Assembly: GCA_002269645.1 (NCBI GenBank)
Contig: NIVC01003447.1
Coordinates: 1-37,610, forward strand
Reading direction: 5' to 3'
DNA length: 37,610 bases
DNA from: Macrostomum lignano
Lineage: Eukaryota
Of the stretch, positions 661 through 22,372 are shown piece after piece. Within the stretch, counting starts at the first letter, position 1. Each line of letters starts with the position of its first letter. Position numbers and translations under genes: made by a program. Under the pieces are notes generated by a model. The model was not told where the DNA came from. It worked only from the letters and a program-made list of their open reading frames with translations, and made no database searches.

Positions 661-708
661 ATATAGAAACACCTATCACAAATACTCGTAAAAGATCATT
701 AGTCTCAC

Positions 709-3700
709 CACGCAGATCAGGCCAGCCCAGCCGGTAGTAAGATAGTAGCTATCCACGCCGGGCCTCAGCTGGCACCTGGGCGCGCATTTCTCGGCCAGTT
801 TGCAGACCAGCTCGGCAAGCCAGTGCTGAGATCCGCACTGCATTTGCTCCAACAGCACCGGCTGTTGTGAGCTGTGCACAGCCAGGTTCAGCTTCACTGG
901 CTTGTCCAGAGTCCACTTATTGAATGACAGACAGGCCACGGTGTACACGCCGGGATCCAGCACGGCTGACAGCATAATGAAGTTGCGCACATATCGCTGG
1001 GTCTGGTGGATAATCCGGCCGGGTCTCAGGTCATTGTCGCCCTGACAGACAACCAGACAGAGGTCGCCAAGCACGATGGAATCGCTGTACCGGTTACACG
1101 GCTGCGGGCATGCGGCGCGTGCGATTGAGTGGTGGAGACGGAATGGAATCTAATGGAAAACATTTTATCTAGATAGATATATAATTGTATATGGATAGAT
1201 CTATAATTTCATCTAGATAGATCTATAATTGCATCCAGACAGATCTAATTTGAATCTAGATGGATCTAATTTGAATCTAGATAGATCTATAATTGTCTCT
1301 ATATGGATCTAATTTGAATCCAGACAGATCTAATTTGAATCTAGATGGATCTAATTTGAATCTAGATAGATCTATAATTGTCTCTATATGGATCTAATTT
1401 GAATCCAGACAGATCTAATTTGCATCTAGATAGATCTAATTCGCATCTAAATAGATCTAATTCGCATCTAGATAGATCTAATTTGCATCTAGATAGATCT
1501 AATTAGAATCTAGATACATCTAAGTTGCATCTAGACAGATCTAATTAGAATCTAGATACATCTAAGTTGCATCTATATAGATCTAATTTGCATCTAGATA
1601 GATCTAATTTGCATCTAGATAGATCTAATTTGCATCTAGATAGATCTAATTTGCATCTAGATAGATCTAATTCGCATCTAGATAGATCTAATTTGCATCT
1701 AGATAGATCTAATTCGCATCTAGATAGATCTAATTTGCATCTAGATAGATCTAATTCGCATCTAGATAGATCTAATTTGCATCTAGATAGATCTAATTAG
1801 AATCTAGATACATCTAAGTTGCATCTAGATAGATCTAATTTGCATCGCACAATCAGTGCAAGCAGCAGCACCCACCTGGTACAGCACCAGATCCAGAGCA
1901 GTCCGCTCCAGCACAGTCATAGCGAACACCTCCAGTGGCTCCTTCGGTTTCAGCAGGCAGGACAGTCGAACTTCGTGAACCTCTGACTCGTTCAGCGGGC
2001 AGTGCGCAATGTCTACCGAGTCGAAATAGGCCAACAGATCATCAAATCCGATCCAGAACAGGCCGCTATCCTGTTGATGGTCGCCGCTGCTCAGCACATC
2101 CGTGAGCTCCTGCCGGTACTGAGGCTCCAGCTCTGCCCAGCTGGCACGGTGGCCCGGGCTGAACCGGCCGCGCCATTCGCCACGGCCCCACGGGTTGCGG
2201 AGCAGCAGCAGCTGGTGGGGCCGGCAGACCGCACCTGTTGGGAGGGTAAGACGCACATCTTAAGGCTAATCCTTATCACAAGGCACATTAGTGAATAAAA
2301 GCGTCCACTAGGAAATCTCAAAGGTATTTAAAGAGTAAAAGTGCACAATGGGGAATAAGAAGTAAAAAAGTGCACAGTGGGGAATCCCAAGAGTAAAAGT
2401 GCACAGTGGGGAATCCTAAGAGTAAAAGTGCACACTGCGGAATCCTAAGAGTAAAAGTTCAGTGGGGAATCCCATGAGTAGAAGTGCACACTGGGGAATC
2501 CCAAGTGTAAATGTGCACATTGGGAATTCTCAAGAGTAAAAGTGCACAGTGGGGAATCCCAAGAGTAAAAGTGCTCAGTGGGGAATCCCAAGAGTAAAAG
2601 TGCACACTGGGGAATCACAAGAGTAAAAGTTCAGTGGGGAATCCCGAGAGTAAAAGTGCATACTGTGGAATCCCGAGAGTAAAAGTGCATACTGGGGAAT
2701 CCCGAGAGTAAAAGTGCATACTGGGGAATCCCGAGAGTAAAAGTGCATACACGAACCTGCAGCACGGAGTAGGCATGCCTCGGATACAATCCCAGGGCTT
2801 GATAAGCTTCATCTGGCAGAGTCATCCGACCGGCGCCGCAACTCGCGCCAATGAGGCAGCCGCGCTCGGCGCCGCTGAGCAGTTTGGCCCAGATCAGCTC
2901 GCGCTCCTCCTGGTTGGACTGCACGGCGTCAGACTGCAGCTCGTAGGACTCGCAGGGGGCGCCAGTGAGAATTGCCAGGCCTTCCAGGCTGCGGCCGGAG
3001 GTCAGGGCGGCGTAGGAGCCGAACTCCTTCGCCAGGGCCTGGGGGTTAGCGAGATATAGGGGAATATTTTGGAATCTCCTTGAATTTTGGGATCAACAGG
3101 AAAGAATTCCTAGATTAAGATGCTTAGAATTTAAAACGAGATTGGCAAGACATTTTGGAAACAATAGGAATTTAGGGAATCAAAGTCGGAATCAGAGTTG
3201 GAATTGGGAATCAGAGAATGGGTATTGGATATCACAGAATGAGTATTTGGGGATCACAGAATGGGTATTTGGGGATCACAGAATGGGTAGTTGGGGATCA
3301 CAGAATGGGTATTTGGGGATCACAGAATGGGTAGTTGGGGATCACAGAATGGGTAGTTGGGGATCACAGAATGGGTATTTGGGGATCACAGAATGGGTAT
3401 TTGGGGATCACAGAATGGGTATTTGGGGATCACAGAATGGGTATTTGGGGATCACAGAATGGGTATTTGGGGATCACAGAATGGGTATTTGGGGATCACA
3501 GAATGGGTATTTGGGGATCACAGAATGGGTAGTATAAAATCGCAATCACAAGTGCCAATTAATTACCTTTTCCACCAAGGCCACCCAGAGCTGCGCGCCT
3601 CTGCAATGCGAGTACACCAAAGTGCGGGTGTCTGCCCGGCAGGGGAAGAAGCCATCAATGTACACAGTTTTCCAGAGCCCGGCAACGCACAGCTGTACAG

Positions 3701-5747
3701 CGTACACGCCCTCTGGATTTACCTAGCAGAATGCAAATTTAAATGAAATTTCAGCATCCTGTTTTTGCCAGTGATTATATTTGATATTGCACGAAAAGGA
3801 TGTGTCTTATCTTATTTAACTGTTTTGCGTGTGCTAAGATACCAAGACAATATTCATAACTTCATACCACAGCAATAATAATGTAGCTATAAGTAAACTT
3901 TTAATCTTTACAGATTTCAATTCGCTTTCATCCATCTCTTTTATTCTCAATAGATTCTCTTTAATGTACCTCTCTCCCCAAACCCACTTATCTCCCCAAA
4001 CCTGCTTCTCTCCAAACCTACTTCTCTCCCCAAACCTACTTCTCTCCCCAAACCTACTTCTCTCCCCAAACCTACTTCTCTCCCCAAACCTACTTCTCTC
4101 CCTGAACCTACTTCTCTCCCCAAACCTACTTCTCTCCCCAAACCTACTTCTCTCCCCAAACCTGCTTCTCTCCAAACCTACTTCTCTCCCCAAACCTACT
4201 TCTCTCCCTAAACCTACTTCTCTTTCCAAACCTACTTCTCTCCCCAAACCTACTTCTCTCCCCAAACCTGCTTCTCTCCAAACCTGCTTCTCTCCAAACC
4301 TACTTCTCTCCCCAAACCTACTTCTCTCCCCAAACCTACTTCTCTCCCTGAACCTACTTCTCTTTCCAAACCTACTTCTCTCCCCAAACCTACTTCTCTC
4401 CCCAAACCTACTTCTCTCCCCAAACCTACTTCTCTTCCCGAACCTACTTCTCTTTCTAAACCTACTTCTCTCATCAACCTACATGTCCGCTGAAATCTGC
4501 CTCCAAAACCTAGCCTCACAACCTTTTTAACCCCTAACATTGACTACCTCTTCTACCCCGATCTCGCCCCCTCCCTGAACCCAGTCGCAAACCTCTCTAG
4601 TCAGGAGGATCCTCCTCAGCATGGAGCGCCTCTCGGCCACCACAGCCAGAGCGGACAGCAGCCAGCAGTCGCCCAGATACCCCTGCCTGATGTCTGCAGC
4701 GGACGCCGTCGCTCGTTCGTCAACAACGATCCAACCGGTCCCGTGAGTGACCGGGCCCGCCTCCGGTCTGTCCGCCTCTTGACTCATCGCCGCTCCGTTG
4801 GTCCTGCCGGTGAAGAAGTTCATCATCTCGTCGACTAAGTTGAGCTTAGCTGGCGAGCGGAGCTGGGGGAACTGGCAGGGCTGGGAGCGCCAGGCTGGCA
4901 GATCCTCGTGCTGTATCTCCTCCAGGCGGCACCAGCGAATGCCGCAAGGCAACTGCCTGCGGGCGGTTGTGTGCGATGACTGGGGAGTTAATGAGGGCGG
5001 CCCAGCAACTGAGGATCTGGGAGGCTGGCCTAGCAACTGAGGATCTGGGAGGCTGGCCCAGCAACTGAGGATCTGGGAGGCTGGCCCAGCAACTGAGGAT
5101 GTGGGAGGCTGACCCAGCTACTGAGGATCTGGGAGGCTGGTGGCCCAGCAACTGGGGATCTGGGAGGCTGACCCAGCAACTGGGGTTCTGGAAGGCTGCC
5201 CCAGCAAATGAGGATCTGGGAGGCTGGCCCAGCAACTTAGGATCTGGGTGGCCCAGCAACTGAGGATCTGGGTGGCCCAGCAACTGAGGATCTGGGTGGC
5301 CCAGCAACTGAGGATCTGGGTGGCCCAGCAACTGAGGATCTGGGAGGCTGGCCCAGCAACTGAGGACCTGGCTGGATCGCAGGCCACGCAGTCAGGAGAC
5401 CTACCCGCCATCCGGCTGGTCCTCCTCCGCAACCCTCCGCCGATGCCGACCGCCCAGTCCGTACAGCGCCCTGTCGCCAGGCGGGAACTCATCGTCAACA
5501 AAGACCTCACCGGCGCTGCGACAAAGAGCGCGCAATTCATCGACGCGTTCCCTGGCGCGCAGCTCCGCTTCACGCTGCACATCGGCCGAGGCGAGGCTGG
5601 CCTGCCGGCCGGGATGAGCGACAGCCGATGTTGCTGAGCCGAGGACTTGGGAGCATCACAGGCGGAGCAGACGGCATTTTCAGTCTGGTTGATGAGGGTG
5701 CATGCCGGGCAGGTCCAGGCAGAGGCTTTAGTCTTTGTTGATTCAGA
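709..5747 (-). CDS. CAPN15: Calpain-15 / small optic lobes (SOL) family cysteine protease, multi-exon, 3' end beyond the window's left edge
   Basis: Minus-strand exons read by hand: ~5747-5405 (RanBP2 zinc finger [21 protein letters not shown], then VFVDDEFPP), ~4956-4593 ([18 protein letters not shown], catalytic Cys), 3722-3567 ([23 protein letters not shown]...LWVALVEK), 3038-2757 ([15 protein letters not shown]...HAYSVL, catalytic His), 2234-1876 (LLRNPWG, catalytic Asn; GLFWIGFDD), 1149-709 (SOL-homology C-terminal domain). All junctions are GT-AG. Two 1-nt deletions (~5640, ~2218) must be repaired. The 5405/4956 junction and the start codon are uncertain. Confidence 0.93.
1165..1845. 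repeat. 21-bp minisatellite (ATCTAGATAGATCTAATTTGC) filling a calpain intron
   Basis: Tandem units visible directly. They explain the HLDRSNL ORF at 1567-1800. Confidence 0.95.
2330..2750. repeat. ~29-30-bp minisatellite (GAGTAAAAGTGCACACTGGGGAATCCCAA) in a calpain intron
   Basis: Tandem units between the exons ending at 2757 and starting at 2234. Confidence 0.93.
3200..3532. repeat. 22-bp minisatellite (GAATGGGTATTTGGGGATCACA) in a calpain intron
   Basis: Tandem units visible directly. They account for the repetitive ORFs at 3142-3746. Confidence 0.95.
3968..4470. repeat. 18-bp minisatellite (AAACCTACTTCTCTCCCC) in a calpain intron
   Basis: Tandem units giving spurious SPNLLL and GREVGL ORFs. 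Confidence 0.95.
5000..5368. repeat. 28/24-bp minisatellite (CCAGCAACTGAGGATCTGGGAGGCTGGC) in a calpain intron
   Basis: Long 28-bp units and shorter 24-bp units are seen in tandem. Confidence 0.93.
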
Positions 5748-5894: not shown

Positions 5895-6460
5895 TGGGGA
5901 AGAAATTTTGAGATGTCAAGTCTTGGGGGAATTGCTGAGATGTCAATTCTTGTGGGAATTGCTGATATGTCAATTCTGGGGGGAATTGCTGAGATGTCAA
6001 TTCTTGAGGGGAATTGCTGAGATGTCAAGTCTGGGGGGAATTTCTGAGATTTCAATTCTTGAGGGGAATTGCTGAGATGTCAAGTCTGGGGGAATTTCTG
6101 AGATTTCAATTCTTGAGGGGAATGGCTGAGATGTCAATTCTTGAGGGGAATTACTGAGATGTCAATTCCCTCTTATACTCTCTCAGTCTCTCCTTCTCTT
6201 GTCTCCTTTCTTCTCTCTCCACTCTCCTCTCTCCTCCTTTATCTGTTATCTCTCATTTCTAATCACTCCTTACACCTCTTTCATCTCTAAAACCTTATCT
6301 CTTCTCTCTTCCCTTTACTCTCTTATCTCTCTTTTCACCTCTTTCCTCTCTCCTGTCTCTTCTCTCCTCTCATCTGCAGCTCTCTGCTCTCTTATCTCTA
6401 CTCTCTTCTCTCTCTTCTCTACTTTCTCCTCTCTACTTGCTCTTCTCTACTGTCTCTACT
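5895..6460. repeat. ~26-27-bp minisatellite (GGGGAATTGCTGAGATGTCAATTCT, ~5895-6168) followed by a CT-rich low-complexity tract (~6170-6460)
   Basis: Read directly from the sequence, upstream of the calpain zinc-finger exon acceptor at 5748. Confidence 0.9.
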
Positions 6461-7230: not shown

Positions 7231-10200
7231 ATTCCCTCCCCACATGTATGAGTCACAAGCTGCCCACAACCTGTAACACTCTTGGCTATCTAGTATATAC
7301 TGGTATATTTTATAAATTTACACTTAAAATTAAATAGACTTAAATTTAGACTTACTTAGCCCTTAGGCACTTAAATATATATTTATTTAAAAATATGTAG
7401 TCTTTAATTAAAAGATTTCCGTTTATGAGTGTAAGTAATAAGTAAAAATCATTATTAAGAATACAAGCCTATATAAGCTTATTGCTAAGCCTATAATGCT
7501 TTTTGTTAAAGAATCAGCAAATTTTCCAATGCTATTAGGCCTAATGTTAGATTTGACAAAAGTGTAAACAATCTAGACAGTTAGGCCCTACTGTATCAGG
7601 CTGAACTCTGACATTATAATAATAATAAACAACAACTGCTCGTAAATATTTAAACTCGATTGCTGCGTCGAAAAAGTATGGAATATCCTACGATTCATGA
7701 GTAATACATACTCGTGTTATTCATATGATTCATGGTTGACAACTTGACATAAGATGAGTACGAAATGCGTACGTATTAAGTACTCGTACGTACGCGCATC
7801 GAGAGGTCGAACCAGAAATGGTCGAGAGTACACACCTCATCCTCAGCCCACGCCTCCGCGTTACTAAAACAATCAAAAACATATTTTAAAGCATATGTTT
7901 ATTTTTTTTTTAAACTTTGACGGTAACATAAAAAACTATGTATGCAACGCAAAAATACGAATCGCAAAACTTTGTTGTTGTGATTGAACGCGATAATACT
8001 TGGCAGGTCCGGGATTTTAAGTTCAATACTATACTGCTCTAAAATAATAGGATAATTGAGTAATGAAGCGGCTTGCGAGTGGAAGCTTGAGAAGCAGCAA
8101 GCGAGCAAAAGATCTTGGGTATATTTGTTTAAGCATAGTCTTTATACTTGAGAGAATAATAGGGAGGTGTGACTCAGAGCGAACTGGCTGGCTGGGCAAA
8201 ACTCCCCAGCAGCCAGGCGTACAGGGGCCTGTGCACAGGCGGGCCCCGCTCTCGACCGTGCACCAGTCTGGCCACCACAGTAAGTAAAATTGAATGTCTT
8301 GAAATGGATTCGGCTGTCTTAAATAATTATCCGCCCTTGGTCGGGGGCTTTTAATTTAGGCCTCAGAGTGCAGAAATTAACCCCTTAGCAATCAGCTGGC
8401 TCCCATTTTTGTCAGTTGATTAAGCCCCAAGATAGCTCGAAAAGATGTGGCAAGCTGCAGCTAGCTGAGACAAACACAGTGAGAGACAATTGCAGGGATT
8501 ATAGTTCTAAAGGTAGATGCATTACGTACGAAAATGATTAGATTAAGCTAACCCACCGCCGCTAAAACAACTGGATTTATTTAGCTGGCAAATACGGACT
8601 CACTTACATGTAACATGTACATTAGGAGGTGATGTGCCTATGTGTCTGCAAACTATACTATAGCTGTCAATCTCGAAGTCATAGCTAATAAAAGAGGACA
8701 CTTCTAGGATTGGATTGCGGTTCACATAAATGATGTAGACCATTGCAGGCCAACAGTTACGATTTCTGCAGGGAGTTTTTACGCTGGCGAGCCCGATCTT
8801 ATATTATGACATTATTGTGCTTCAGAAATTAAAGTAGATGTACATGTACTGCAGCATGTACGAAGACGCACGCGCAAGTACATGTAGCTAAACATAATTA
8901 TTAAGCTTTAATTGCGACTGAAACAATAGGAAAAGGAGTGGTCATGACTCAAGCAAACACTATACGCTCGTATATCGCTAGTGCGTGCATGCCGAACCAT
9001 TCAATGCTTTGACAATGCATATGAAATCACCTCGCAGCCAACGTTGGACGACTGCGCAAAATTGCCTGCATGTCAATATACGAGGTTATTTGACTGAGTA
9101 ACAATTGTCTGTATTTCTAATCCGACTCATTGTACCACAGCCAAAGCCTGCACCAGTGCACTACTACTTTAAGACTGTTTTCCCGGGTGCACTTGTGGGA
9201 GCAACCTCAAAGACGACTAATCCAGGGCTTAGGGGATAGGGTTGGTTAGGCCGGTTAGAGTTAGGGAATGAAATTCACTCACGAATGCCCTTTAGCTATA
9301 GTATGAAAAAATTTAAATTCTATTTCGCGTATCGTTATTTTTTCTGGTTTTATAGTATCATCTCAACTGTGTACATTTATGTATAGTTAATGTAGTAATA
9401 CTACAATTTTTTATCGCATAGTGCGTCTAATATTTGGTGAAAATTAAACTAAATCATCTATATTATCTTGCAACGCATGTTACTCGTGTGTTAATGACTA
9501 GTATTACTCGTAAATTAATAAGTTTTTGGAGGCTTCGTACAATAAGCTTCGAAAGCCTATTTTAAATGTTGAATTGGCAAGTATACTTAGTAAGAGACTG
9601 AGTATGAGTCGATCGAGAGTTTTCTAGTTGAGAGAGTAAGGCGCCTAGAGAGTTTTAGTGGCCAATGTCGCACCAACGTGTACCAATTGTGACTTAGGGA
9701 TTAGCTATTGACTTTGCATGTAGCTCGTAATGCCTGCAGTTTCGAATCAAATGAGCATTTTACCTCACCGACCAACCCTTCACTGGTTCCAAGTCCGATT
9801 CAATAGTCCATTTTACCCCCTCCGCATAGCCACTCGCCTACCGCCTTGGCTCTATAGCATATTTCATATTTCAATACTCCGCCTTACCAACGCATGTGAC
9901 TGATGGTGGCTGGCAAGCGCCACATGAATTTGGGGATCGATAAGTGCAAGGGGTGGTTGGTGCTCTGCAAGCAGCTGCAATGGCGCCCCTATTTCTCAGA
10001 CATTTTCTTATTGCTGATCTGAAAGGCATGGCTACCGGGGGTTTTTGCATCATAGAAAAGTGAATCGAACTTCTTAATGGTCACAAAAAAGTGCCGGGGG
10101 GAGTATTGAGTAGCAACTGCAACTCGCTCAGTATTGGAATGACCGGAATGGGTATGTAGTCGATTGACGATTGTAGGAGATCCTCATGAGACTCCCTATT

Positions 10201-10455
10201 GGGAGGGGGGTTAGGAATTGAGTATTTGGTACTAAAGAAAAAGATAGTAGCGATGAATCCAGAATGCTGCCCACGGGATTGGCATAGCTACTCTATTGTA
10301 GACAGCAGCAGGTGGTTTTTCTTTTCCTTGGGATTAAAAGACAAGTCAGAAGAAAAGACCCATACTCCCTTCCAATTTTCAATATTCTAGCTCATACTCT
10401 GCTCATCATACAGTGCTATTGCTAATAGACAGAAGTTGTATTGAATTAGATAAAA

Positions 10456-13400
10456 ATGACAAGGAGACTGCTTGTCACTGCTGCAGTGCTTGCTGTTTTG
10501 CTAAACCTGTGCTCCGCTGGTGTGCCTCCCATTGGACCGCTTCAAAAAGCTGTAAGTGCCTCTTCCACTACTGCTGCGAAAGGCAAAATGTCCGGCAGCA
10601 CGGGAAAAAAGGCTACCGGCTCATCCGGCGGGTCAGACCCTAGCAAGTACCAGGGGGCTTTCGACACGATAGGCTCTGCCATCAGCAGTTCGAATGATCG
10701 AACAAAGCAACTGCTCGGCGGGCTCATGGACGCAGTGAAGAATGACCCTGGCCAACTCATCACGAGGAATATGCTTGACAAGCTGGCGCAGCAGAATTCT
10801 TTTCTGCCTCAGAAAGCGGGAACCCGTTCCGTCAGTTTGCAGTCCGAACAAGGATTCAATGGATTCTCGAACTATCAGCCATCCGGATGGGTCATGACCG
10901 AGACTATGAGCGGACCTGCTGAAAAAATGCCACAAACAACGGACGAAAGTGTTCCTGTCTACACCTATCCGCAAGGACTTGGTCCTGTGTTAATCAACGG
11001 TTGCACAGCAAATAGCTACTCTGAAACCAGCCCCTGCTTTTCCAGCAAACACCTCGGCAGAGGTAAGGGAATCTGTCCAAATCTCATGGACGCAGCTGCC
11101 TACGTGGGTGTGGGATTCGACGGCCGAGGCTATTACAAAATCGAGAGCCGGAGAGCCAGTTTGGTACAGCGAGCGTGCTTCAATATGGCCAGCTTCTTAG
11201 GCAAGGATGTTCCCGACACGATGAACGTGTTCGGAATCTTCGAGACCACAGCTGAAACAAGGTCTTTTCAGTCAGCCGATGAGTATCTTCGCTTCATCAG
11301 AGAGAAGGCTGGTTTATCTGAACAAAGGAATCTTTTCCTAAGTGAGGCTACTAAACATTCCAAGTCTAGCGGGTTCGGCATGAACCTCGGTGCGATCGGA
11401 TCCATTGCTGGGGGTGCGATTGGGGCTGCCGTCGGAGGTCCTGCGGGTGCCCAGGTGGGAGCTTCTCTCGGAAGCGCTGTTGGAGGAGGCATCGAGGGAG
11501 GAACGGCGAGCGGCTCCGGAAGTTCCTCATCCACAAACAAAGGTACGTCTAGATCTAGTGTGACTCAAACCGATAAGTCAAATGGTCAACAGAGTGCTTC
11601 TAACAACTTCTTTGCCATTATGTACGTCAATATCATCCTGTTCGAGATCACACTAGACGAGGTGAAGCCCAAAGACATAAACCTTGCAGCCTTGAAAGAC
11701 TACATGAGCCTGCCAGAGTCTTACTTTTCAATCGGAGCTGATGTGAGTTACCAGAATTTCCTGCTTCGTTGGGGAACGCACTTCATTCGATCTGGAAAAT
11801 TCGGTGGGCAATTAAAGATTACAAAGACCGCTAAGACAGACAAGCTCAAGTCGGCCCAGGAGTTTGCTAGCATCGCAGAGACCGAGTTTCAGTCGATGTT
11901 CTCAACGCTGCAGTCGAAATATTCTCAAGAGAGCAGCAGCTGGAATGTTTTAGGATTTGGTGGAGAAAAGAATTCTGCGTCGCAGAATTCGAATGGAAAA
12001 TCTACGTCTCAGTACAGGAGCACTTTGGATCAACGGAGAAAGCTATCCCAAAGCTTCCGTCAATCAGAGTTTACGCATACCACCGTTGAGGCTCAAGGAG
12101 GAACGCCTGAGATCGCCGAAGCTCTTGTGGACTTCTACACTCCCGCATTTAGACAACTGTACAACAGGTGGATCGACTCCATCAAGGACTACGTGAAACC
12201 GTTCGAGTTCCAGTTGAAGTCTATCGACCAACTATTTAACATGAACATGGATGACCTGTTTCCATCCGGAAATCTTGACTTTGGGTGCATGGGAGGAGCT
12301 GGCGGTAAAGTAAAATTTCTAGTGGAACCTGGAACAAAGCGTCGCTATTATTTAGACGTGGAAACGTCATTTGAAAACAATAAAACAACTACCACTATGG
12401 TAAAAACATACTGCAAGTACAATAGTCTTAAAGAGTTCAAAATTGATTTGGTTAGGCGTAGAATTTCATTAGAGAAGGCAGTGGCGGTGTACATGGCGGA
12501 GGGACCATTTCCTACTTCATCATTTGAATTGAATGCTGGACAACCTGGATGCGACCAAGAGACTCTGGCTGAGCTGAACCTTTTCAGTAAGGGGACTAGA
12601 CCTTTGAAATTCGCCGAATTAAGCAAGGCTCCCTTTTTAATAGCCTTTGATTTGCCAGCGGATATTCCTAACATGCTCAAATCGAGTGCCAAGTATGTCA
12701 TGCTTCATCGAGCCGACCGATGGTTTGCCACGGAGCCAGGACAAATGCACATACATCTGTATGATGGCTGTCAGCTGGTGGGTTACAAGCCTGCGGAGAC
12801 GAAGATCTGCTTTAAGAACATCATTCTCACCTACGAGGAATCTTCAGGCTTCTTTCATATCGATCCTAAAGACTTTGCTGCATCGAAGCGTCGCAACCCG
12901 ATCCTTCCAGACTGGCTCCGAGGCTCAACTGTAGCGAGGGCTTCAAAGATAGACTTATCAAACGGCACCTTTGCGAACTCAGCTTCCGTGCCATGCAATG
13001 TGAAGTGGATGAATTCGCACAGACTCGATCCAGGAAAAGATGAAAACTGCATTCACTTCACGGCAGCGAGTTCAGGTGACATTTTCGTTAACTTTGCATC
13101 CATTCCCAAAGATCACACTACTTGGTACTACCTGCAGATCAACATGGATGGCGTCGCATTCTATAAGGCGATGCATCTGCAGAAACGAGACTACAAGAAG
13201 GGAATGGGAACGCTTGGAGACAGGAACCTCTATCAGTCCTATTTTGTGTGCGTGAACCAGGCCGATGGCGAGGTGCTGATGCAGTTCGGCAAGGCTGATT
13301 CAAACAGCGACGTCGGCACCGTCTACTCTGGTTACAAATTCGCTCAGGACAGTCAGTACAGCCGATTGACTTTTTACTCATTCGGCTCCGGCTCCAAGTC

Positions 13401-13644
13401 CGTGTCATTGATGGACATCCGACTCACGAGACAGATGCCAAAAGTGGAATGCCTAAATAACGACTACATTTTGAAGAACGGTCATTGCGTTCTCAACTGC
13501 CATAAAGAGTGCATCGACTGCAATCTGGCTAAAGACGACAAGTCTTGCTTTAAGTGCCGAAATGTGCGGATTGAAATAGCAGGCACTGGAAGTAAACTGA
13601 GTAACAAAGTAATTCAGTGCTTGCCAGAGTGTCCGAAAGGCTAC
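10456..13644 (+). CDS. Secreted MACPF/perforin-like protein, N-terminal part (signal peptide, MACPF domain, beta-rich domain, start of furin-like Cys repeat)
   Basis: Hydrophobic leader MTRRLLVTAAVLAVLLNLCSAG. MACPF signature YQNFLLRWGTHFIRSGKFGG at 11749-11808. Ser/Gly/Thr-rich TMH segments flank it, then VEAQGG and WIDSIKDYVKPFEFQLKSI. C-terminal CHKECIDC...C..C...CLPECPKGY is a furin-like repeat. Continues into the next frame through a 1-nt deletion at ~13645. Confidence 0.9.
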
Positions 13645-15282
13645 GACTGAGTAACAAGGATAAGAAGCTGTGCCAACCTTGCAGTCCTGGTAAATTCAAG
13701 GATTCAGTTGGTAATCAAAAGTGCAACACCTGTTTTCCCGGAAGCTTTAGCGCGTCGGGTGCTTCAAATTGCAGCATATGCAGTCCAGGAACATTCAGCG
13801 CAAAGCCGGGATCCGCAGAGTGTGAGAAGTGTCCCGCAGGATCCGCGGCCAAGTCAAAGGGATCAAGAACGTGCAGTAAATGCAGTGCAGGAACATTTTC
13901 TAAAATTGGACAGGTGGAATGCACGCCATGTCCAGTTGGTCATTTTATTGGAAAAACAGGTCAATCCAAGTGTCAGTTGTGCCAGGCAGGTTTTTATGCT
14001 GCGAATCAGGGCATGCAAGCCTGCACAAAGTGTCCTGCCGGAACATCGAGCACCGAGGGTTCAGTGAGTTGCGATAACAACTGCAAGAGAGGCGAGTTCA
14101 GTCCGAAAAAGGGAGTCGCATGCAAGAAGTGTCAGGCAGGAACATTCACTCCAAGCTCAGGATCGAGCAGCTGCACACGTTGCCCGACAGGCTCCTTCCA
14201 GGCGCAGGAGGGTCAGGGGTCGTGCAGAACGGCCCCAGCAGGATCGTACGCTGCAGGTCCGGGTGCCAAACGCAGCACACCATGTCCAGCGGGGACCTAT
14301 AACCCCAAGACAGGAAAGTCCAGCTCATCAAGTTGTGTGCCATGCTCTGCAGGAAGCTATTCAAAGTCGGCTGGCTCTACTGTCTGCACCCGTTGTCCCA
14401 AAGGCAGTTACCAACCGCTGAAGAACCAGAAGGAGTGTAAGAGCGCCAGTCCTGGACGGTTTGTCGAATTAGAAGGTCAGTCGGTGCAGAAGTTGTGTCC
14501 ACCTGGAAAAATCTCAGGCGCCGCGGCCTCTACGTGCACACCATGCAGTGCCGGTAGTTTTGCAAACCAAATTGGCTCGACCTCATGCAGCCGCTGTTCC
14601 GCCGGGAGCTGGAGCGCCGCTGGTGCGAGCTTTTGCAAGCCATGCAACGCTGGAACGATTTCGGGAGCCGGCGCGACGACCTGCACTCAGTGTACTGCTG
14701 GTCGCTTTGCCGATAAAGCGGGCTCGAGCGTTTGCAAAGACTGCGCTCCTGGAACCTGGAGTAGCGCTGGAGCTACCAGCTGCATTAACTGCCCACTTGG
14801 CACTTACTCGGCCGCGAAAGCTTCTGTCTGCACGCGGTGTCCTCCCGGAAAGTACGCCGATGCTCCCAAGTCAGTAACCTGCAAACCGTGCCGTGCAGGC
14901 AGCGTTAGTAAAACTTCAGGCTCGAGGGCGTGCACGTTTTGTCCGGCGGGCTATATGTCCTCTGCAGGTGCGACCAGCTGCAGTGCGTGTCCTGTCGGTC
15001 ATTACTCTAAAATTGGTTCGTCGAAGTGCACTCCTTGTGCAGCCGGAAAGTACGTGAACAAAAAGGGCGCAGCGAGCTGTGCTCAATGCCTTGCGGGTCA
15101 GTACTCAAATGCAGGCAGCGCCCACTGCACGGCATGCCCACCGGGAAAATACTCAAATACTGTCGGATCCAGCACTTGTAAGCAGTGCGATCTAAACTTT
15201 GCTTTGGCGGTTCATTCTGGTAGGGTTAACTGCGACCTCTGTCCAAATCTACGGGCCACACGCGATGCAAGAAGCTGCCTCA
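13645..15282 (+). CDS. Same gene, middle part: ~30 tandem 16-17-aa Cys-rich units (CxxCxxG[F/Y/W]), Ephrin_rec_like/GCC2-GCC3/TNFR-like stalk
   Basis: About 30-32 CxxCxxG units counted by eye in ORF 13617-15290. The ORF has no proper start of its own and completes the furin-like motif (CPKGY-RLSNKDKKLCQPC). It ends at a canonical donor A|GTGAGT (15283). Confidence 0.88.
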
Positions 15283-15984
15283 GTGAGTAATAAATTAATG
15301 AACTGATTCTATATTTTCCTGAGTACATATATCATTATCCAGTTAGCTGAATGGGCTGTATTCTGGATGCAGTAACCCCGTGCAGCTAAGCCAGTTATGT
15401 CTGTTTTAAAGTCACAAACAATTATTTCCTGAACACCGCTATCATTTCCATTCTTATCTACTAAATATATGAGTCATCGAAAGGTCTAATATTGGTATAG
15501 TTTGTTTAAATTCAGAGCTGTTGTACTCGCACGAGTGTGTTCAGGGATTCGTGTTCTAAAGTTATAGCGTCTCTGTGTTGGCAACCTAAAATTCCCTGTT
15601 TAATTCGTAAGCAAAGAGATTTGGCTAAACCGTTTTGTATATAGCATTATCGCATTCAATAAGGAGTCCTGAATTCTTTTTAATGAATAACGTCGTGTTT
15701 AAAAAATTTTTTGCTTTATTAAAATTTAATGTGGTACAAATAATAGTGAAGTAGTTTATAAAACTCGGGTACCCTAACGAACTTTTTATTTATATAAATC
15801 CATTGAAAAATTAAACCACAAGGTAACAGTTGAATTCGCAAAATTCAAACTAAGAATTAGTGACAGAATCGTGCAAAATCATCTTTTACGGATCAGTCAT
15901 CCGCCGGTTTTGATTTTGATTTCTTTTGGTAGAAAGTTGATTCCTATGTAACTGATGCCGACTGATGCCTTTTTTACGCTTTAG

Positions 15985-16343
15985 ACAGAGCAAAACCCGC
16001 TGCGTGCCAGCCGATGGATACCTGTCTAAGCGCATCTGACAACGACCAATGGAGCTATGCTGAAGTACCTAGAGCCCAGTCATTATTCTTTACGTTTTCT
16101 CATCCAATAAATGTGAGAAAAATCGTGATTTACACCAGAGCCGACTGCTGCAAAGAACGCGCAAGAAACTTGCAAATTGGATTGGCATCTCCAAAGCATG
16201 GCAACAAATATTGCAACACCGATAACACTGCGTTTAGTTACCGACGCGTTATTTCTTGCCACCACGACTACGTTACGCTGATCGTAGTGAAACAGCGCAT
16301 TGCGAGTCATCTGTCGTTGTCCATCCATTTTATGACTGAATGA
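15985..16343 (+). CDS. Same gene, last exon: F-type lectin (fucolectin/FTP, discoidin-fold)-like domain
   Basis: Acceptor TTTTTACGCTTTAG| at 15984 joins the phase-1 donor at 15283 in frame (..SCL-N-RAKPAACQPMDT..). VRKIVIYTRADCCKERARNLQIG resembles the F-type lectin pattern V.I.NR.DCC.ERL..F.I.VG. The family's N-terminal His motif is not obvious and the C-terminus looks divergent. Confidence 0.72.
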
Positions 16344-17091
16344 GTTGCCATCGGAGCATCCTCGGAGGCTGGGGACAGTTTTAACAAATTTCCTTTGATT
16401 TTTTTTTCTTCCAAGTTCAAACGGTTGGGAATTTTGGCGATGGTTTGCTGTTTTTCGTAACTGACGTATAAATATTCCCGTGGATGGGTCTTAAAACTTC
16501 TAGCTTTTTTGTTAGTTTGGGTTAATGGTAATTTTGGTTATTTTTTTCCTACGATATATTATTCCATTTTAAAACCTATTAAATGCTTGAGATTGCAGTT
16601 TTTTTTCAATTTTTATTTAAATCCCTATTTTACGCTGATAGCTATCAGATAACATAAGATACTCAATTCCTAAGATAATATCTGCAGCTATAAATTTGAA
16701 TTTAAAGTAAAAATATCAACACATAGAGCCAAAAGTCATATAGTCACGGACGACTTTATAGATTGAAGTCTTAATTGAGGGCTGAAATCAGTAGAGCTAG
16801 TTAACACCTAAAAAGTTAAGGACCAATGTGCTTAGCTTTTTCGCTTCAGTATGACATACATGTAGCATAAAATATAACGGAACTGGAGCTTATGAAGGCT
16901 TTACTAATTTCCTCTTATAAAACTGTATTCCGCGTTTTGCATTAGCACTTTTTTAGCTCAACACGATCGCCTGATCAATTTAACAGTAATGGTACGAACG
17001 AGAGCCTGTGAAAGTGACTGACTTAAAATCTAGTATTTTTCGACGATATCAAATTTCAAGCTTGCGAAGGTATGAAGCTAGTCTAGCCAAT

Positions 17092-17349
17092 ATCACTGCT
17101 GAAAGAATATAATGGATTGCTAATCTAACCAACATCAGTGCTATAATAATATAATGGATTGCTAATCAAACCAAATCACTGCTAAAATAATATAATGGAT
17201 TGCTAATCTAACCAAATCACTGCTGAAAGAATATAATGGATTGCTAATCTAACCAACATCAGTGCTATAATAATATAATGGATTGCTAATCAAACCAAAT
17301 CACTGCTAAAATAATATAATGGATTGCTAATCTAACCAACATCACTGCT
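17092..17349. repeat. ~41-42-bp tandem repeat, six units arranged as a duplicated trimer
   Basis: Units ATCAC/GTGCT-N5-ATATAATGGATTGCTAATC[T/A]AACCAA. The variants gaaag, ataat, aaaat recur in the same order twice. Confidence 0.92.
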
Positions 17350-18056
17350 GGAGTAATACTAAAGGGCACACATGCACCAATAAAAGGTGAGTCACTGTGT
17401 TGGGAGGGATGATCAGAGTAACTGTACCCATGATTATAGTTCTGCAGTGCAAAGGCTACTCAAGGACTACTAAAGTAGACGTTACTATCTATGTTACTAT
17501 CTATGTTACTTTAGTCGTCCTTGAAGCTACTCTGGCTGGCACAGACAAAACTTGGATAATAAAATGCTTCCTTTGATATGCCAACTGATATGCAGGATGG
17601 AGTTGTATAATTGTACTGCAAAGTAGAGAAAGCGGGCTGTCCAGACTCAGTTCGCACACTGTCATTCAATTTGTGTGCCCAAAAACGGCCTGGTACGAGC
17701 GGTTAGCGCTCATTTAATGAAATGAAATTGGGGACGGAAATTATTCTAATACAATCCTTGTCATTTTTTCAACTTCGTTACTGTGATGAGCTGGCTTTCA
17801 CAGCCAAGACCCTCTCACCCCATATACTTAGTGAGTCAAAAATGCCTTCCGTACAAAATTTCTCTCAACCTACTACACTGCAGTTGACAATGAAAAGAGA
17901 GAGCATAGGCTATTGCACACTGTTTTGCTACAGTCTTGTACGCTCGTAGAAGAAAATGACATCATGAAGTGCATAAAAAGCATTTTTATGCTACCTGCTC
18001 TCAAAAAATTCAGTTAGCTTTTTTAGAAGAAAAATTACTTGGACCAACCAACTGCC

Positions 18057-20483
18057 ATGGAGCCAGAATTAAGAGCTGCACTAGAGGCAAAAGACGATGA
18101 AAAACTGCAGCAACTCTGCCCGCTTATCGACTCCAATATGGAGTTGACGGTCGGTGGCTACAAGTATTTCTTCAACGAAGAGCGAACTCAGCCCGTGACG
18201 CATCACGTCGTCTGCAAGACGCGAAGTTCGCAGTGCCTGAAACTTCTGATTGACAAGTTCGGACCCGAGTTCGTGACCTGCAGAAACGACAGGGATGAGA
18301 CCGTTGTGCATCTTATAGCTCAGCATCAGGACGACTCCTGGATGGAACTGATTCCAGAACCTATTGTCCAGCAAAGCCTTAAAGTGACAGCATGGAAGGG
18401 CAGAACAGTGACTCACTATGCTGCTATGAACGATGTAAGCGACTCAGTATTAAAACTACTTGTAGACAAGTGCGGAGTCGACTGTCTCAAAAGCTTGGAC
18501 AATGACGGCAACACGGCCCTCCATCTTGCTGCGCAGTATCAGGGTAGCGATTCGATGAAGCTAGCTAAAACAGTACTGGGTACTGACTGCTTCCAAAGTA
18601 GAGGTTTCTCGAATCGGACTGTGATTCACTATGCAGCTTCCAACACCAGTAGTCACACTTCACTAAAATGGCTTGTCGTACTGTGCGGAACCGACTGTCT
18701 TAAAGCTTCTGATAAAGACGGATACACTGCCGTCCATCTCGCTGCACAGTACCAGGGCATTAAGTCAATGGAGCTGATGAAGGACGCGCTTGGAACTGCC
18801 TGTTTCTATCCAAGCAAAAGCTCCCAAGAGAAAACGGTGTTTCATTGTGCAGCTTCAAACAGATCCAGCAATGCATCATTGAAAGTGGCTTGTTCAAGAA
18901 TTCGGATCTGACTGTCTAACCAAATTTTCCGACAAATTCGGAAACATGCCCCTCCATTTTGTTGCAGAGTGGCAGGGTGCAGATTCGATGGAGCTGATGA
19001 AGAAGGAGCTTGGAAGCAGCTGTTTTCAACTCCAAGGCAAGTCACATAAAACATCGATACACTATGCCGCTGCTAACCGAGAAAGCAACGAATCGCTAAA
19101 ATGGCTTCTCAATGAGTACGGACCCGAAAGTCTCAAAGTTCCGGACAAAGATGGAAACACGGCGGTCCATCTTGCTGCCCAAAATCAGGGCGTCGACTCA
19201 ATGGAACTGATGAAGACAAAGCTCGGAGACGCCTGTTTCGAAATAAAAGGCAAACTACGCTGGACTCCTGTTCACTTTGCAGCTACCAACCTTAGTAGCA
19301 ATGCGTCACTAAAGTGGCTCGTCAAAGAATTGGGATCAGACTGTCTTGAATTGCCTGACAAGGACGGAAACACTGCCATACATCTCGCAGCTCGGTACCA
19401 GGGCATCGATTCGATGAAACTGATGAAGGAAGCGCTCGGAAAGGACTGCTTTCTGTTGAAAGGCTGCTTGAACAGAACTGCAATTCACTGTGCAGCTACC
19501 AATGAAAGCAGCAACCAATCGCTAAAGTGGCTCGTAAGAGAATGCGGAGCTGAAAGTCTCACAGTTCCCGATCAAAATGGACACACGGCTGTCCATCTTG
19601 CCTCACAGTATCAAGGCACAGACTCCATAGAACTGATAAAGCAAGAGCTCGGTACGGAGTGCTTTTTACTAGAAGAAAGTTTGTTTGCTAGAACGCCAGT
19701 TCATTGTGCTGCTTTAAACAGAGTCAGTAACGCATCCTTAAAATGGCTAGTCAAAGAGTTCGGATGTGGGTGTCTTAAAACTCCCGATAAAGACGGAGAC
19801 ACGCCTATCCATCTTGCCACACAGTGTCAAAGCATTGATTCACTGGAACTGATGAAAATAGAGCTCGGAATCAACTGTTTTCAGCTGAAAGGCTACTCAA
19901 ATAGAATGCCAATTCATATTGCCGCTTCAAGCAGCGAGAAATTAGCATTGTTTAATTGGCTGATAAAAGAGTGTGGACCCGATTGTCTGAAGGTTCCTGA
20001 GAAAAACGGAAACACGGCTGTGCATCTTGCAGCTCAGTATCAGGGCATCGAGTCGATGAAACTGATAAAGAAAGAGCTAGGAACTGGTTGCTTCCATTTG
20101 AAGGGCAGATTGATGCGGACCCCCGTTCATTGCGCCGCTTGTAACAAATTTGGCTACTCAGTGCTCAAGTGGCTTGTCCTGAAGTGCGGTCCCGACTGTG
20201 TGGCTGCTGTCGACAAAGACGGAAACACGATCGTTCATCTCGCTGCAGAGCACCAGTCAGCTGACTTGTTGCAGTTTCTAATTGATCAAATTGGACCTCA
20301 AGTACTCTCTCTGAAGAACAACAAAGGAGAAACACTAGTAGAATGTGTGGAGAAGGACTCGGATAATGATCGTAAAGCAAGAAAGCGAAACTGGATCGAA
20401 CTTACAAAGGATTTTGAGTCTTTTTATCTCGAGGAGGGAGCTGTTTCTGTGAATGCAGAAGCTACGGATGATTTGTTAAACCA
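18057..20483 (+). CDS. Ankyrin-repeat/kinase gene, exon 1: ~20 ankyrin repeats in alternating A/B pairs of ~71 aa
   Basis: ORFs 18039-18911 and 18946-20487 join by removing one base at 18882-18885 (TTG AAA G TGG gives SLKWLVQEFGSDC). Repeated DKDGNTAVHLAAQ and RTPVHCAA motifs. Ends at donor CA|GTAAGT (20484). Confidence 0.9.
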
Positions 20484-20836
20484 GTAAGTTTCAGGCTCTT
20501 TACAATTTGAGTTGCGGTTTAAATTACCTGCTGCGTATGTAGCTCGTACTGAAGTATTTTAATTTGATGTTTAAGAAAAGCTTTAAAAATGTCTGTGACT
20601 GTGAAGAGCTTGTACTCGTAATTATATAATTCCAATGCTCCAACGAATATAGCCTACCCTATAAAATATAAAAACCATAATTTTTAATGAATGCAATGAA
20701 TGGTAAAAGTCAAGGGATGAAGCAATTTAATTTGATGCTTATCTGCTAATAGCTTATTTTTGTAGTTATCTGTAAAAAATGTGTGTACCAAAGTGTTGCA
20801 ATATAAAGTATACAAACAAACTGATTCAATTTTCAG

Positions 20837-22078
20837 ACTGCGTACAGCTTTGGAAGCCCGTGACGATGCGCTTCTGCGGCGACTCTGCCTGCTTCTTAAC
20901 TCTAACGTTGAACTAACGGTCAATGATTGTCTCAACAAGGAACGAACTCAGTCTGTGACTCATCACGTCGTCTGTAAGTCGCGAAGTTTGCAGTGCCTGA
21001 AGCTTCTGATATCCAAATTCGGACCCGACTGTCTGTTAAACAGAAACAATCGAGGTGAAACCGCGGTGCATTTGACTGCTATGCACCAGGAAAACCTGTG
21101 GATGAAACTAATTCTAGAAGCTCTTGGCCGTGACTGCTTCAAGGACACAGCATCTAACGGTCGAATGGTGACTCACTATGCTGCTACGAATGAGACAAGT
21201 AACTCATCGCTAAAGTGGCTTGTTGCCGAGTTTGGACGCGACTGTCTCTTAGTACCCGATAAAGAAGGAAGCACAGTCGTTCATCTTGCCGCAGAGTATC
21301 AAGGTGTCGACTCCATGGAACTGATGAACAGAGAGCTCGAAACCGACTGCTTCAAAGAGTTAAAAGGATCCCAGAATCGAACGGTAGTTCACTATGCCGC
21401 CGGAAACAATATTAGCGATGCACCGCTTCGTTGGCTGGTGAAAAAGTTTGGACCAAGCTGTATCAAATTTCCAGATAAACATGGTGTCACGCCTATCCAT
21501 CTAGTTACATTAAACTCCAGAAGCACGAGTAGTATGACGCTTAATTGGCTAGTTTCTGTCGGCGGCCCGGACTGTCTCACTATTCCTGACAATGAGGGAA
21601 ACACACCTGTCCATCTCGCTGCAGAGTTTCACAACATCGAATCCATGAAATTCATAAAGAAAATACTCGGACCAGAATGCTTTAGAAGAATTGGTTTTTG
21701 GCAAAGAACACCCATTCACTGCGCTGCCGCAAACAGTAACTGCAGTGCCCTGCTTGGATGGCTCATAAAAGAATGCGGACACGACTGTCTGATGTGTCAG
21801 GACAAAGACGGAAACACGCCTGTCCATCGCGCTGCATGCTTTCAGCCAGTTAAATCATTGAAGTTGCTGGCTGACCAAATCGGGCCCGAAATTTTCTCGC
21901 TTAAGAACGCTTCTGGAAAAACAATAGCCGATTTTGTAAACCAGGACTTAGATGAAGACCGAAAACTACAAAAGCAGAGTTGGATCTCGAGCCAACTGAC
22001 GCCAGAGAGACAACTAAACCTGAGGCATCCGGAAGTCAGAATGACGGCATCGGTAGAATCCTTGGGTGGCTCAAGTGG
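20837..22078 (+). CDS. Ankyrin-repeat/kinase gene, exon 2: ~9 ankyrin repeats, paralogous to exon 1
   Basis: Acceptor AATTTTCAG| at 20836 is phase 2 and in frame with exon 1 (LLN-Q-LRTALEARDD). The N-terminal cap matches exon 1 (LRAALEAKDD...ERTQPVTHHVVCK). Ends at donor GG|GTAAGC (22079). Confidence 0.88.
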
Positions 22079-22372
22079 GTAAGCAACTGCAGCATATTTG
22101 TAGCATATTAGAAATCTATTACCGATCATCTTTGGGGAGCAGCTCGCGGTAAACGTGTCTGAGTCTTGGGGTTGTCCAACAATTCATTCCCATATAGTCC
22201 GACCCCTTTGAGGCACAGAGAGTGTACGTGCCTGACCATTCGAGATGGTACATCCTGTGTGATGTTTGTTATGTTTTGTTATGACTTGCATGTACTGCAT
22301 CCTGTGACTAGCCATCAAGTTCCCCACTGCATTTAAAACTGTGTCCATTCATTTCACTCTGGAAACAAGCAG

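Follow-up and report, generated by a model that had tools for sequence, protein, structure and literature searches.

A probable two-exon gene for a stalked MACPF protein with an F-type-lectin-like head in Macrostomum lignano

Results

Three open reading frames join into one predicted protein

We analyzed a 37,610 nt stretch of the Macrostomum lignano genome (NCBI GenBank assembly GCA_002269645.1, contig NIVC01003447.1, positions 1 to 37,610 of the forward strand; hereafter the window), in which three open reading frames (ORFs) appear to encode a single secreted protein composed of a MACPF domain, a long cysteine-rich stalk and an F-type-lectin-like head (Table 1). After addition of one base in codon 1064 and removal of an intron, ORF1, ORF2 and ORF3 are translated into a chain of 1,728 amino acids (aa) with no internal stop codon. 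A previous reading of the DNA letters without database searches (the sequence-only reading) had located the same three ORFs and joined them into one protein of ~1,730 aa, and the domain order it proposed was recovered here: signal peptide, MACPF domain, beta-sandwich region, furin-like module, ~30 CxxCxxG units and F-type-lectin-like domain. These features are too consistent to have arisen by chance.

Three single-chain paralogues, P0001 (BOX15_Mlig017717g9), P0002 (a Logan transcript) and P0097 (BOX15_Mlig027274g1), are collinear with the repaired product and 56-61% identical to it over ~1,340-1,390 aa. These three and P0005 (Mlig021963g3), which is truncated at its N-terminus and falls in the same identity range, have the same layout from the signal peptide to an F5/8-C or F-type-lectin-like end, but their stalks are shorter (1,523-1,538 aa in total), the RxDCCxxR motif is partly or wholly lost, and they are annotated as hypothetical proteins only. 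P0002 is one unbroken ORF with short flanks on a 4.9-kb Logan contig and carries core, stalk and head together; this layout points to an mRNA encoding all three parts.

The last intron has counterparts in the paralogues. Among the in-frame donor/acceptor combinations that were enumerated as splice pairs, the junction 15282^15985 uses a GTGAGT donor and leaves eight residues between the flanking cysteines, as in P0002 (seven in P0001 and P0005). P0001 has a 94-nt phase-1 intron in the codon two residues past the conserved cysteine (..GLCF/RRLTFAC..), P0097 has an equivalent phase-1 intron (..DKCY/RKIRMRC..), and the window junction reads ..RSCL/NRAKPAAC... Two further relatives, BOX15_Mlig022132g2 (P0003) and A0A1I8J970 (P0004), have the core, the stalk and the intron position in common with the window gene, but the place of the lectin-like domain is taken by a pair of kringle-like modules of ~90 aa, encoded by separate phase-1 exons. 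In P0003, a phase-1 intron of 3,026 nt lies at the same place and is followed by the two kringle-like modules, which are split by another phase-1 intron. The homologous introns of the annotated P0001, P0097 and P0003 corroborate the phase-1 intron that had been read at 15283-15984. Since kringle-like exons replace the lectin-like head after the same intron in P0003, the head is a swappable cassette. On these gene structures, the lineage-expanded family is built of a constant core-and-stalk mega-exon and exchangeable head exons, either F-type-lectin-like or kringle-like, bounded by phase-1 introns. Exchangeable exons bounded by phase-1 introns are a classical signature of exon shuffling.

Taking these data together with the family and mechanism considered below, we think it fairly probable that the locus is a single two-exon protein-coding gene for a secreted stalked MACPF protein, possibly with an additional non-coding exon upstream at its 5′ end.

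The MACPF core and the cysteine-rich stalk

Scanned in windows of 19 residues, the protein is strongly hydrophobic at its N-terminal signal peptide only. Because the N-terminus is signal-peptide-like and no further hydrophobic segment follows, the product is likely to be secreted.

The MACPF domain seen in the sequence-only reading was confirmed by profile and structure. A Pfam scan of ORF1 matched PF01823 at residues 383-597 with 50.9 bits (cut-off 21.5; E=3e-13). The MACPF signature motif is (Y/W)-G-(T/S)-H-(F/Y)-x6-G-G; the corresponding sequence WGTHFIRSGKFGG at residues 439-451 (11770-11808) is invariant in an alignment of 21 family sequences. The AlphaFold2 (AF2) model of ORF1 was of medium quality (pLDDT 56.6, with cores of 70-88), and its strands at residues 256-271, 383-400, 442-461 and 541-547 form the bent central sheet of MACPF proteins. 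The position of TMH1 (residues ~272-381) and that of TMH2 (residues ~465-537) are each taken by a long helical or disordered cluster of low confidence. The top Foldseek matches of this model were all MACPF proteins, namely GNIP1Aa (3.9e-11), perforin (3.3e-10), Mpf2Ba1, Plu-MACPF, C9 and MPEG-1, with E-values of the MACPF matches from 4e-11 to 1e-5. A sequence search of the PDB with ORF1 gave marginal MACPF matches only, with no chain of a cholesterol-dependent cytolysin (CDC) and no haemolytic relative. We also observed a Gly/Ala-rich, glycine-zipper-like stretch, GFGMNLGAIGSIAGGAIGAAVGGPAGAQVGASLGSAVGGGIEGG, at the TMH1 position (11371-11502, residues 306-349); it is kept in P0002-P0004 and is replaced by Ser-rich sequence in P0001.

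The region following the MACPF domain matched no Pfam family and is conserved among the flatworm, amphioxus and coral homologues. Its model is confident over residues 720-1000 (pLDDT ~75-88), and Foldseek additionally retrieved GRIFIN (TMt 0.65), other galectins, the galectin domain of an adenovirus fibre, and LNS/LamG and legume-lectin-like sandwiches. As the model is all-beta and confident there, a ConA/galectin-like beta-sandwich is most likely placed at residues ~845-995. The homologues of amphioxus (P0007-P0009) and the coral Oculina (P0010-P0017), all uncharacterised, have in common with the window protein the ~850-1,000-aa core of MACPF and beta-sandwich (30-37% identity); Cys-rich modules and a head of binding type come after it. 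The amphioxus proteins end in C-type lectin and Ephrin_rec_like domains, and the coral proteins in discoidin F5/8-C, LamG/pentraxin, EGF or fn2 domains. PF26010 (DUF8003) and PF27023 (6BHPP), which appear in precomputed annotations of relatives, were not seen in our Pfam scans of those relatives. The coral homologue P0011 matches Pfam Furin-like at the place equivalent to the furin-like module of the window protein.

Downstream of this module, the Pfam scan of ORF2 identified Ephrin_rec_like (PF07699) in 17 stretches with 241 bits (cut-off 23.1), overlapped by matches to TNFR_ELAPOR1_6th and NCD3G. In agreement with the long CxxCxxG stalk described from the letters alone, 27 units fit the pattern C..[CA]..G, and three embedded degenerate units bring the number to ~30. 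TNFR/furin-like modules of ~40 residues measure ~2.5-3 nm, and by this rough estimate an extended stalk would reach tens of nanometres.

Two points weigh against pore formation by such a protein: many animal MACPF proteins are not lytic, and a rigid stalk of tens of nanometres between head and MACPF domain is an awkward geometry for attacking a membrane bound by the head. The product may instead be a secreted adhesion, matrix or signalling molecule like astrotactins, BRINPs and Torso-like, with the MACPF fold serving oligomerisation or binding and the stalk and head providing adhesion to the matrix or to cell surfaces. Modules of the Ephrin_rec_like, furin-like and kringle-like kinds are characteristic of receptors and of proteins that act in extracellular adhesion; the stretches at TMH1 and TMH2 have an unusual length, low complexity and low model confidence; and the PDB sequence search revealed no haemolytic relative of ORF1. 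However, the MACPF signature is intact, the closest structures (GNIP1Aa, perforin, Mpf2Ba1, C9 and MPEG-1) are those of true pore-formers, and immune or toxin effectors are the more usual setting for a family that has expanded within one lineage and carries swapped lectin-type heads. We therefore hold a non-lytic role to be rather unlikely.

The head is related to F-type lectins

Pfam gave only weak F5_F8_type_C matches for the last exon (ORF3). We searched 1.8 billion representative sequences with the head using phmmer and obtained 76 matches with E<=1e-3, the best non-self match having an E-value of 1.4e-15. All nine of the matches that were scanned against Pfam are tandem F-type lectins (PF22633/PF00754), and the tandem F-type-lectin matches show the classical CTHT...NRxDCCxxR...LTLCEVEVYG pattern. 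The MACPF core is absent from all of the 75 closest relatives of the head, and a sequence search of the PDB with the head returned no match. The AF2 model of the head is a beta-sandwich (pLDDT 72.6), for which the underlying alignment consists mostly of F-type lectins. By query-normalised TM-score, its best structural matches are F-type lectins (0.55-0.63), including SpX-3 (2j22, 0.63), lectinolysin (4gwj, 0.60) and eel agglutinin (1k12, 0.59). From this homology to tandem F-type lectins and the TM-scores, we regard the head as homologous to F-type lectins, and the label 'F-type-lectin-like' given in the sequence-only reading as correct.

The relationship is distant, and three observations speak against taking the head for a regular F-type lectin. 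It aligns to the F-type-lectin profile at positions 53-128 of 140 only, i.e. over the C-terminal two thirds; its own N-terminal third is poorly conserved; and its lowest Foldseek E-values (~1e-4) belong to generic cupin/GOLD sandwiches, those of F-type lectins being 5e-4 to 1.5e-3. The end of exon 1 was considered as the first strand of the lectin fold, and it gave no score against the F-type-lectin profile.

A working fucose-binding lectin at this position would make the protein a fucose-targeted pore-former that L-fucose would block, as the sequence-only reading had envisaged. The fucose-binding motif of F-type lectins is HX24RXDX4(R/K) (PMC5712786). The head sequence RADCCKER fits RXDX4R and includes the vicinal Cys-Cys, so that both arginines, the aspartate and the cysteine pair are kept, unchanged in both genomic copies of the locus (see below), and lectinolysin provides a case of an F-type lectin directing a pore-former of the MACPF/CDC superfamily (PMC5712786). 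The motif fails at its histidine, however: no His is found 24-26 residues upstream, the residues at -25 to -27 being Glu, Ala and Tyr, and the His-bearing loop of canonical domains is ~7-10 residues shorter in the head. At the site of the calcium-binding motif h2DGx (PMC5712786), where the alignment is uncertain, the window protein carries ASDND, in which Asn stands in place of Gly; the paralogous sequences are TIDND, AMDNS and AVDGS. Among the paralogous heads, P0002 lacks the second Arg, and P0001 and P0005 lack the entire CC motif.

The two genomic copies, which are ~98% identical, differ at 20 amino acids, of which 10 lie in the 118-residue head and one in the first 1,140 residues. The nonsynonymous-to-synonymous ratio (pN/pS) of the head is 0.89 between the copies, based on tiny counts (11.5 vs 3.5), and Fisher's test of nonsynonymous vs synonymous changes in head vs core gave p=0.49. 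Towards the 3′ end, silent divergence between the copies increases as well. These figures are no proof that the head is under positive selection, as regional divergence or gene conversion may explain the pattern. The head appears to be the least constrained part of the protein. With the triad His absent, the profile aligned in part and this weak constraint, fucose binding by the head is not supported, and we judge a fucose-targeted pore-former to be unlikely.

The frameshift and a second genomic copy

ORF1 ends ...GGC TAC GAC TGA, the ORF2 frame reads CTG AGT AAC from 13647, and the stop codon produced by the frameshift lies at 13648-13650. The paralogues P0001, P0002, P0097 and P0005 are uninterrupted at this point (CP.GYQLSD / CPRGFQLSD, consensus CP.GYQLSD..LC.PC). 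Through a look-up of the neighbouring gene we retrieved a second copy of the locus on contig NIVC01000894.1 of GCA_002269645.1 (L005), whose ~98% identity extends over window positions 8455-24392, with weaker matches onward in tandem repeats to 26076. L005 reads AGGCTACGAACTGAGTA at the frameshift site, where the window reads AGGCTACG-ACTGAGTA. By comparison with L005, exactly one A of a GAA codon is missing, which accords with the single-base repair previously suggested near 13645.

Within the 5.2-kb coding sequence (CDS), the window and L005 differ by two indels only: this A is absent from the window, and a T is absent from L005 at the point facing window position 12905. Both lesions are one-base losses within a two-base run, and each site is intact in the opposite copy. 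The neighbouring ankyrin gene likewise has reciprocal 1-nt indels, an extra G at 18885 in the window and a missing T in L005 opposite 20244. Because L005 is intact at the frameshift site and has a 1-nt deletion of its own, and because the ankyrin gene shows the same reciprocity, the frameshift most probably stems from a consensus error in a long-read assembly, the gene itself being intact. A mini-intron at 13617-13650 in place of the frameshift was also examined and rejected: it would have no GT..AG pair of fitting length and phase, and L005 shows a plain 1-nt difference.

Divergence between window 10310-16490 and L005 2200-8400 is steeply graded along the locus. The copies differ at two sites in the first 3 kb of the CDS and at none in 146 nt of the 5′ flank; from the stalk through the intron and the head to the 3′ flank, the divergence is 2-5%. 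This gradient suggests that the 5′ part of the locus underwent gene conversion or recombination.

A conflicting gene model

The only existing gene model at the locus is P0021 (UniRef A0A1I8HJ22, 'F5/8 type C domain-containing protein'), a product of 149 aa without a start Met. It is 100% identical to the window in an upstream exon and in the last exon, and it splices 8163-8279 directly to 16011-16343 via canonical GT-AG sites, thereby omitting the MACPF and stalk exon. The acceptor at 16011 is cryptic and lies 26 nt within the head exon. Tried as acceptor of the last intron of the MACPF gene, it was rejected, as the stalk frame cannot be joined to it. The 39 upstream residues of P0021 look non-coding. 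The exon 8163-8279 may be a 5′ untranslated exon of the MACPF gene and the P0021 model a by-product of the broken ORF; alternatively, P0021 could be a real exon-skipping transcript or an annotation artefact.

Several facts weigh against an intact, expressed gene. The sole gene model skips the MACPF and stalk exon and uses an acceptor incompatible with the stalk frame; the protein collections searched contain no protein >70% identical to the core or stalk of the locus; no gene is annotated across the locus in the GenBank copy L005; and both known copies carry a frame-breaking indel, as would also be expected of two decaying pseudogenes. Exact look-ups in a contig collection with the 1,064-aa ORF1 and with P0021 gave no match. 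The frame breaks plausibly account for the missing >70%-identical proteins and for the missing annotation in L005.

These facts, together with the pN/pS of ~0.9 in the head, would also agree with the window copy and its twin being young pseudogenes with genuine 1-nt deletions, a big exon that is no longer translated and only a residual transcript, in which the upstream exon is spliced to 16011 and a 109-aa ORF starts from the ATG at 16014. However, the lesions differ between the copies, each being intact in the other, and the reciprocal indels of the ankyrin gene and a 1-nt frameshift in an ELO copy of the window (see below) point to assembly errors. The 5.2-kb CDS is otherwise free of stop codons, of 109 positions with >=90% conservation among the other family members ORF1 retains 106, as many as the annotated paralogues do, and pN/pS between the copies is ~0.27-0.29 in core and stalk. 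Decay of both copies is thus improbable.

It is very improbable that the last exon belongs to a separate small gene with the MACPF gene inside its intron: the canonical GT-AG sites of P0021 would allow this, but P0021 lacks a start Met ahead of 16014 and has a non-coding-looking beginning, in three paralogues a homologous head follows a homologous phase-1 intron, the 15282^15985 junction keeps the cysteine spacing of the paralogues, and core, stalk and head stand in one ORF on the P0002 contig.

Surroundings of the gene

Ankyrin-repeat gene(s) (Pfam Ank_2) occupy 18039-23364 on the plus strand, with a protein kinase domain (Pkinase) at 22341-23364. The ankyrin ORF, broken at ~18885 by the extra G relative to the GenBank copy, is 100% identical to M. 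lignano BOX15_Mlig014711g4 (P0220). The first exon of an ELO (PF01151) fatty-acid elongase is present in two copies on the plus strand (27719-28279 and 36290-36811), the second of which has a 1-nt frameshift in the conserved stretch past HVFHH (the HxxHH box), changing PPAWWWGVKFVPG to PPSPGGESSSFQ. Calpain (Peptidase_C2) exons interspersed with several minisatellites lie at 676-5036 on the minus strand. Minisatellites with periods of 15-44 nt abound in the window and result in long spurious ORFs on both strands, and the L005 contig ends inside a 16-nt-period array (window ~24.9-26.0 kb).

Table 1. Features of the stalked MACPF locus and minisatellites of the window
Feature	Position	Strand	Basis or remarks
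Upstream exon, uncertain status	8163-8279	+	tblastn: P0021 residues 1-39, 100% identical; preceded by ...AATAG, followed by GTAAGT
ORF1	10456-13650	+	1,064 aa
Signal peptide, residues 1-21	10456-10518	+	MTRRLLVTAAVLAVLLNLCSA, then G; cleavage site read by eye; paralogues begin alike
MACPF domain, residues ~205-600	11068-12255	+	Pfam, AF2 model, Foldseek
Post-MACPF region, residues ~601-998	12256-13449	+	Mixed alpha/beta, then all-beta sandwich ~845-995
Furin-like Cys-rich module, residues 999-1064	13450-13647	+	Cys pattern CLNNDYILKNGHCVLNCHKECIDC...; ends at frameshift
ORF2	13617-15290	+	557 aa
Missing base	13645-13647	+	Window TAC GA- CTG vs L005 TAC GAA CTG; codon 1064 = Glu
Stalk, residues 1073-1574	13671-15176	+	~30 units of 16-17 residues, CxxCxxG(S/T)(F/Y)...
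Linker with 6 Cys and first base of codon 1610	15177-15282	+	CKQCDLNFAL...CDLCP...SCL; collinear with paralogues (CDLNFAL..CDLCP)
Intron, phase 1, GT-AG, 702 nt	15283-15984	+	GTGAGT...TTTAG; homologous introns in paralogues
Last exon: head, residues 1610-1728, and stop codon	15985-16343	+	phmmer, AF2 model, TM-scores
ORF3	16014-16343	+	109 aa
ASDND	16032-16046	+	Sequence
RADCCKER motif	16137-16160	+	Sequence
Minisatellites	9-638, 1167-1846, 2331-2747, 3204-3531, 3967-4472, 4999-5375, 5909-6168		
Minisatellites	17077-17350, 23786-24477, 24928-25989, 26430-27017, 30739-31426, 31686-33298, 35315-35671		

Discussion

The closest known counterpart in design is lectinolysin of Streptococcus mitis, a single chain of an F-type lectin domain and a cholesterol-dependent cytolysin, in which the lectin raises the pore-forming activity of the CDC ~ten-fold by binding fucosylated host glycans (PMC5712786). 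Like the window protein, lectinolysin unites an F-type lectin fold and a pore-former of the MACPF/CDC superfamily in one chain, and in the structural comparison its lectin domain ranked among the closest to the head (4gwj, TMq 0.60). Unlike the window protein, it is bacterial, has an N-terminal lectin adjoining the cytolysin, has no stalk, belongs to the CDC family and retains the full fucose triad. Of these two families, Pfam identified only MACPF in the window protein, and the PDB sequence search returned no CDC chain; the likeness is one of design, not of family membership.

Among animals, apple-snail perivitellin-2 (PV2) combines a MACPF protein with a lectin for targeting (PMC3667788; bioRxiv 10.1101/2019.12.23.880021). 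PV2 differs in having two disulfide-linked chains, a tachylectin-type lectin and no Cys-rich stalk. The repaired window gene is one ORF, and the Pfam scan showed no tachylectin domain in it; the term 'AB-type toxin' used in the sequence-only reading does not fit a single chain with a targeting module and no A/B pair. Perforin and MPEG-1 (perforin-2) resemble the window protein in that a MACPF fold is followed by an ancillary beta-sandwich for membrane engagement, and MPEG-1 is a tethered pore-former too. They bind membranes through C2 or through P2 and transmembrane segments and have neither a repeat stalk nor a lectin head, and the similarity is at the level of the fold only.

We found no description of the family or of its architecture in the literature searched. 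To this extent the architecture is unrecognised, as had been stated, but it is not confined to this locus: at least three other M. lignano paralogues (P0001, P0002 and P0097) have it, it occurs among hypothetical proteins of this species, it has relatives in amphioxus and coral, and lectinolysin had been overlooked. The principle of joining a lectin to a MACPF/CDC pore-former is already known, and the layout exists in public protein sets under the name of hypothetical proteins.

The domain composition would be compatible with the following mechanism. A secreted protein may capture, through its head and possibly its stalk, a surface ligand on a target such as a microbe, prey or a foreign cell; the ligand would probably be a glycan, though not demonstrably fucose. 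Capture would concentrate the protein on the target, where the MACPF domains could assemble into oligomers and their two helical clusters open out into a beta-barrel pore; the beta-sandwich of the core would be the membrane-proximal domain, the part played by C2 in perforin. The analysis shows the gene structure, the domain identities, the homology and the pattern of conservation; that the protein is secreted, binds a ligand, oligomerises and forms pores is inferred here, as is its role in the animal.

More tentatively, the gene may be a member of an undescribed class of 'stalked perforins' common to flatworms, amphioxus and corals, in which a constant killing core on a Cys-rich rod is combined with phase-1-shuffled, fast-diverging heads of the F-type-lectin-like, kringle-like, C-type lectin, discoidin or LamG kind. 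We regard this as a possibility and not as the expected outcome. Known pore-formers guided by a lectin are a bacterial one (lectinolysin) and one snail toxin (PV2); the literature searched has no description of an animal MACPF protein that combines, in a single chain, a very long stalk of repeats with recognition heads that can be exchanged. Single-base errors may hide further large single-exon M. lignano genes in the same way. If the protein forms pores, it would offer a natural system for studying how a distant targeting module controls the site of the pore, and would show a diversification of perforin-like effectors in invertebrates. If the 'stalked perforins' are real, these animals would possess pore-formers aimed at different targets, a repertoire that is encoded in the germline and serves immunity or prey capture.

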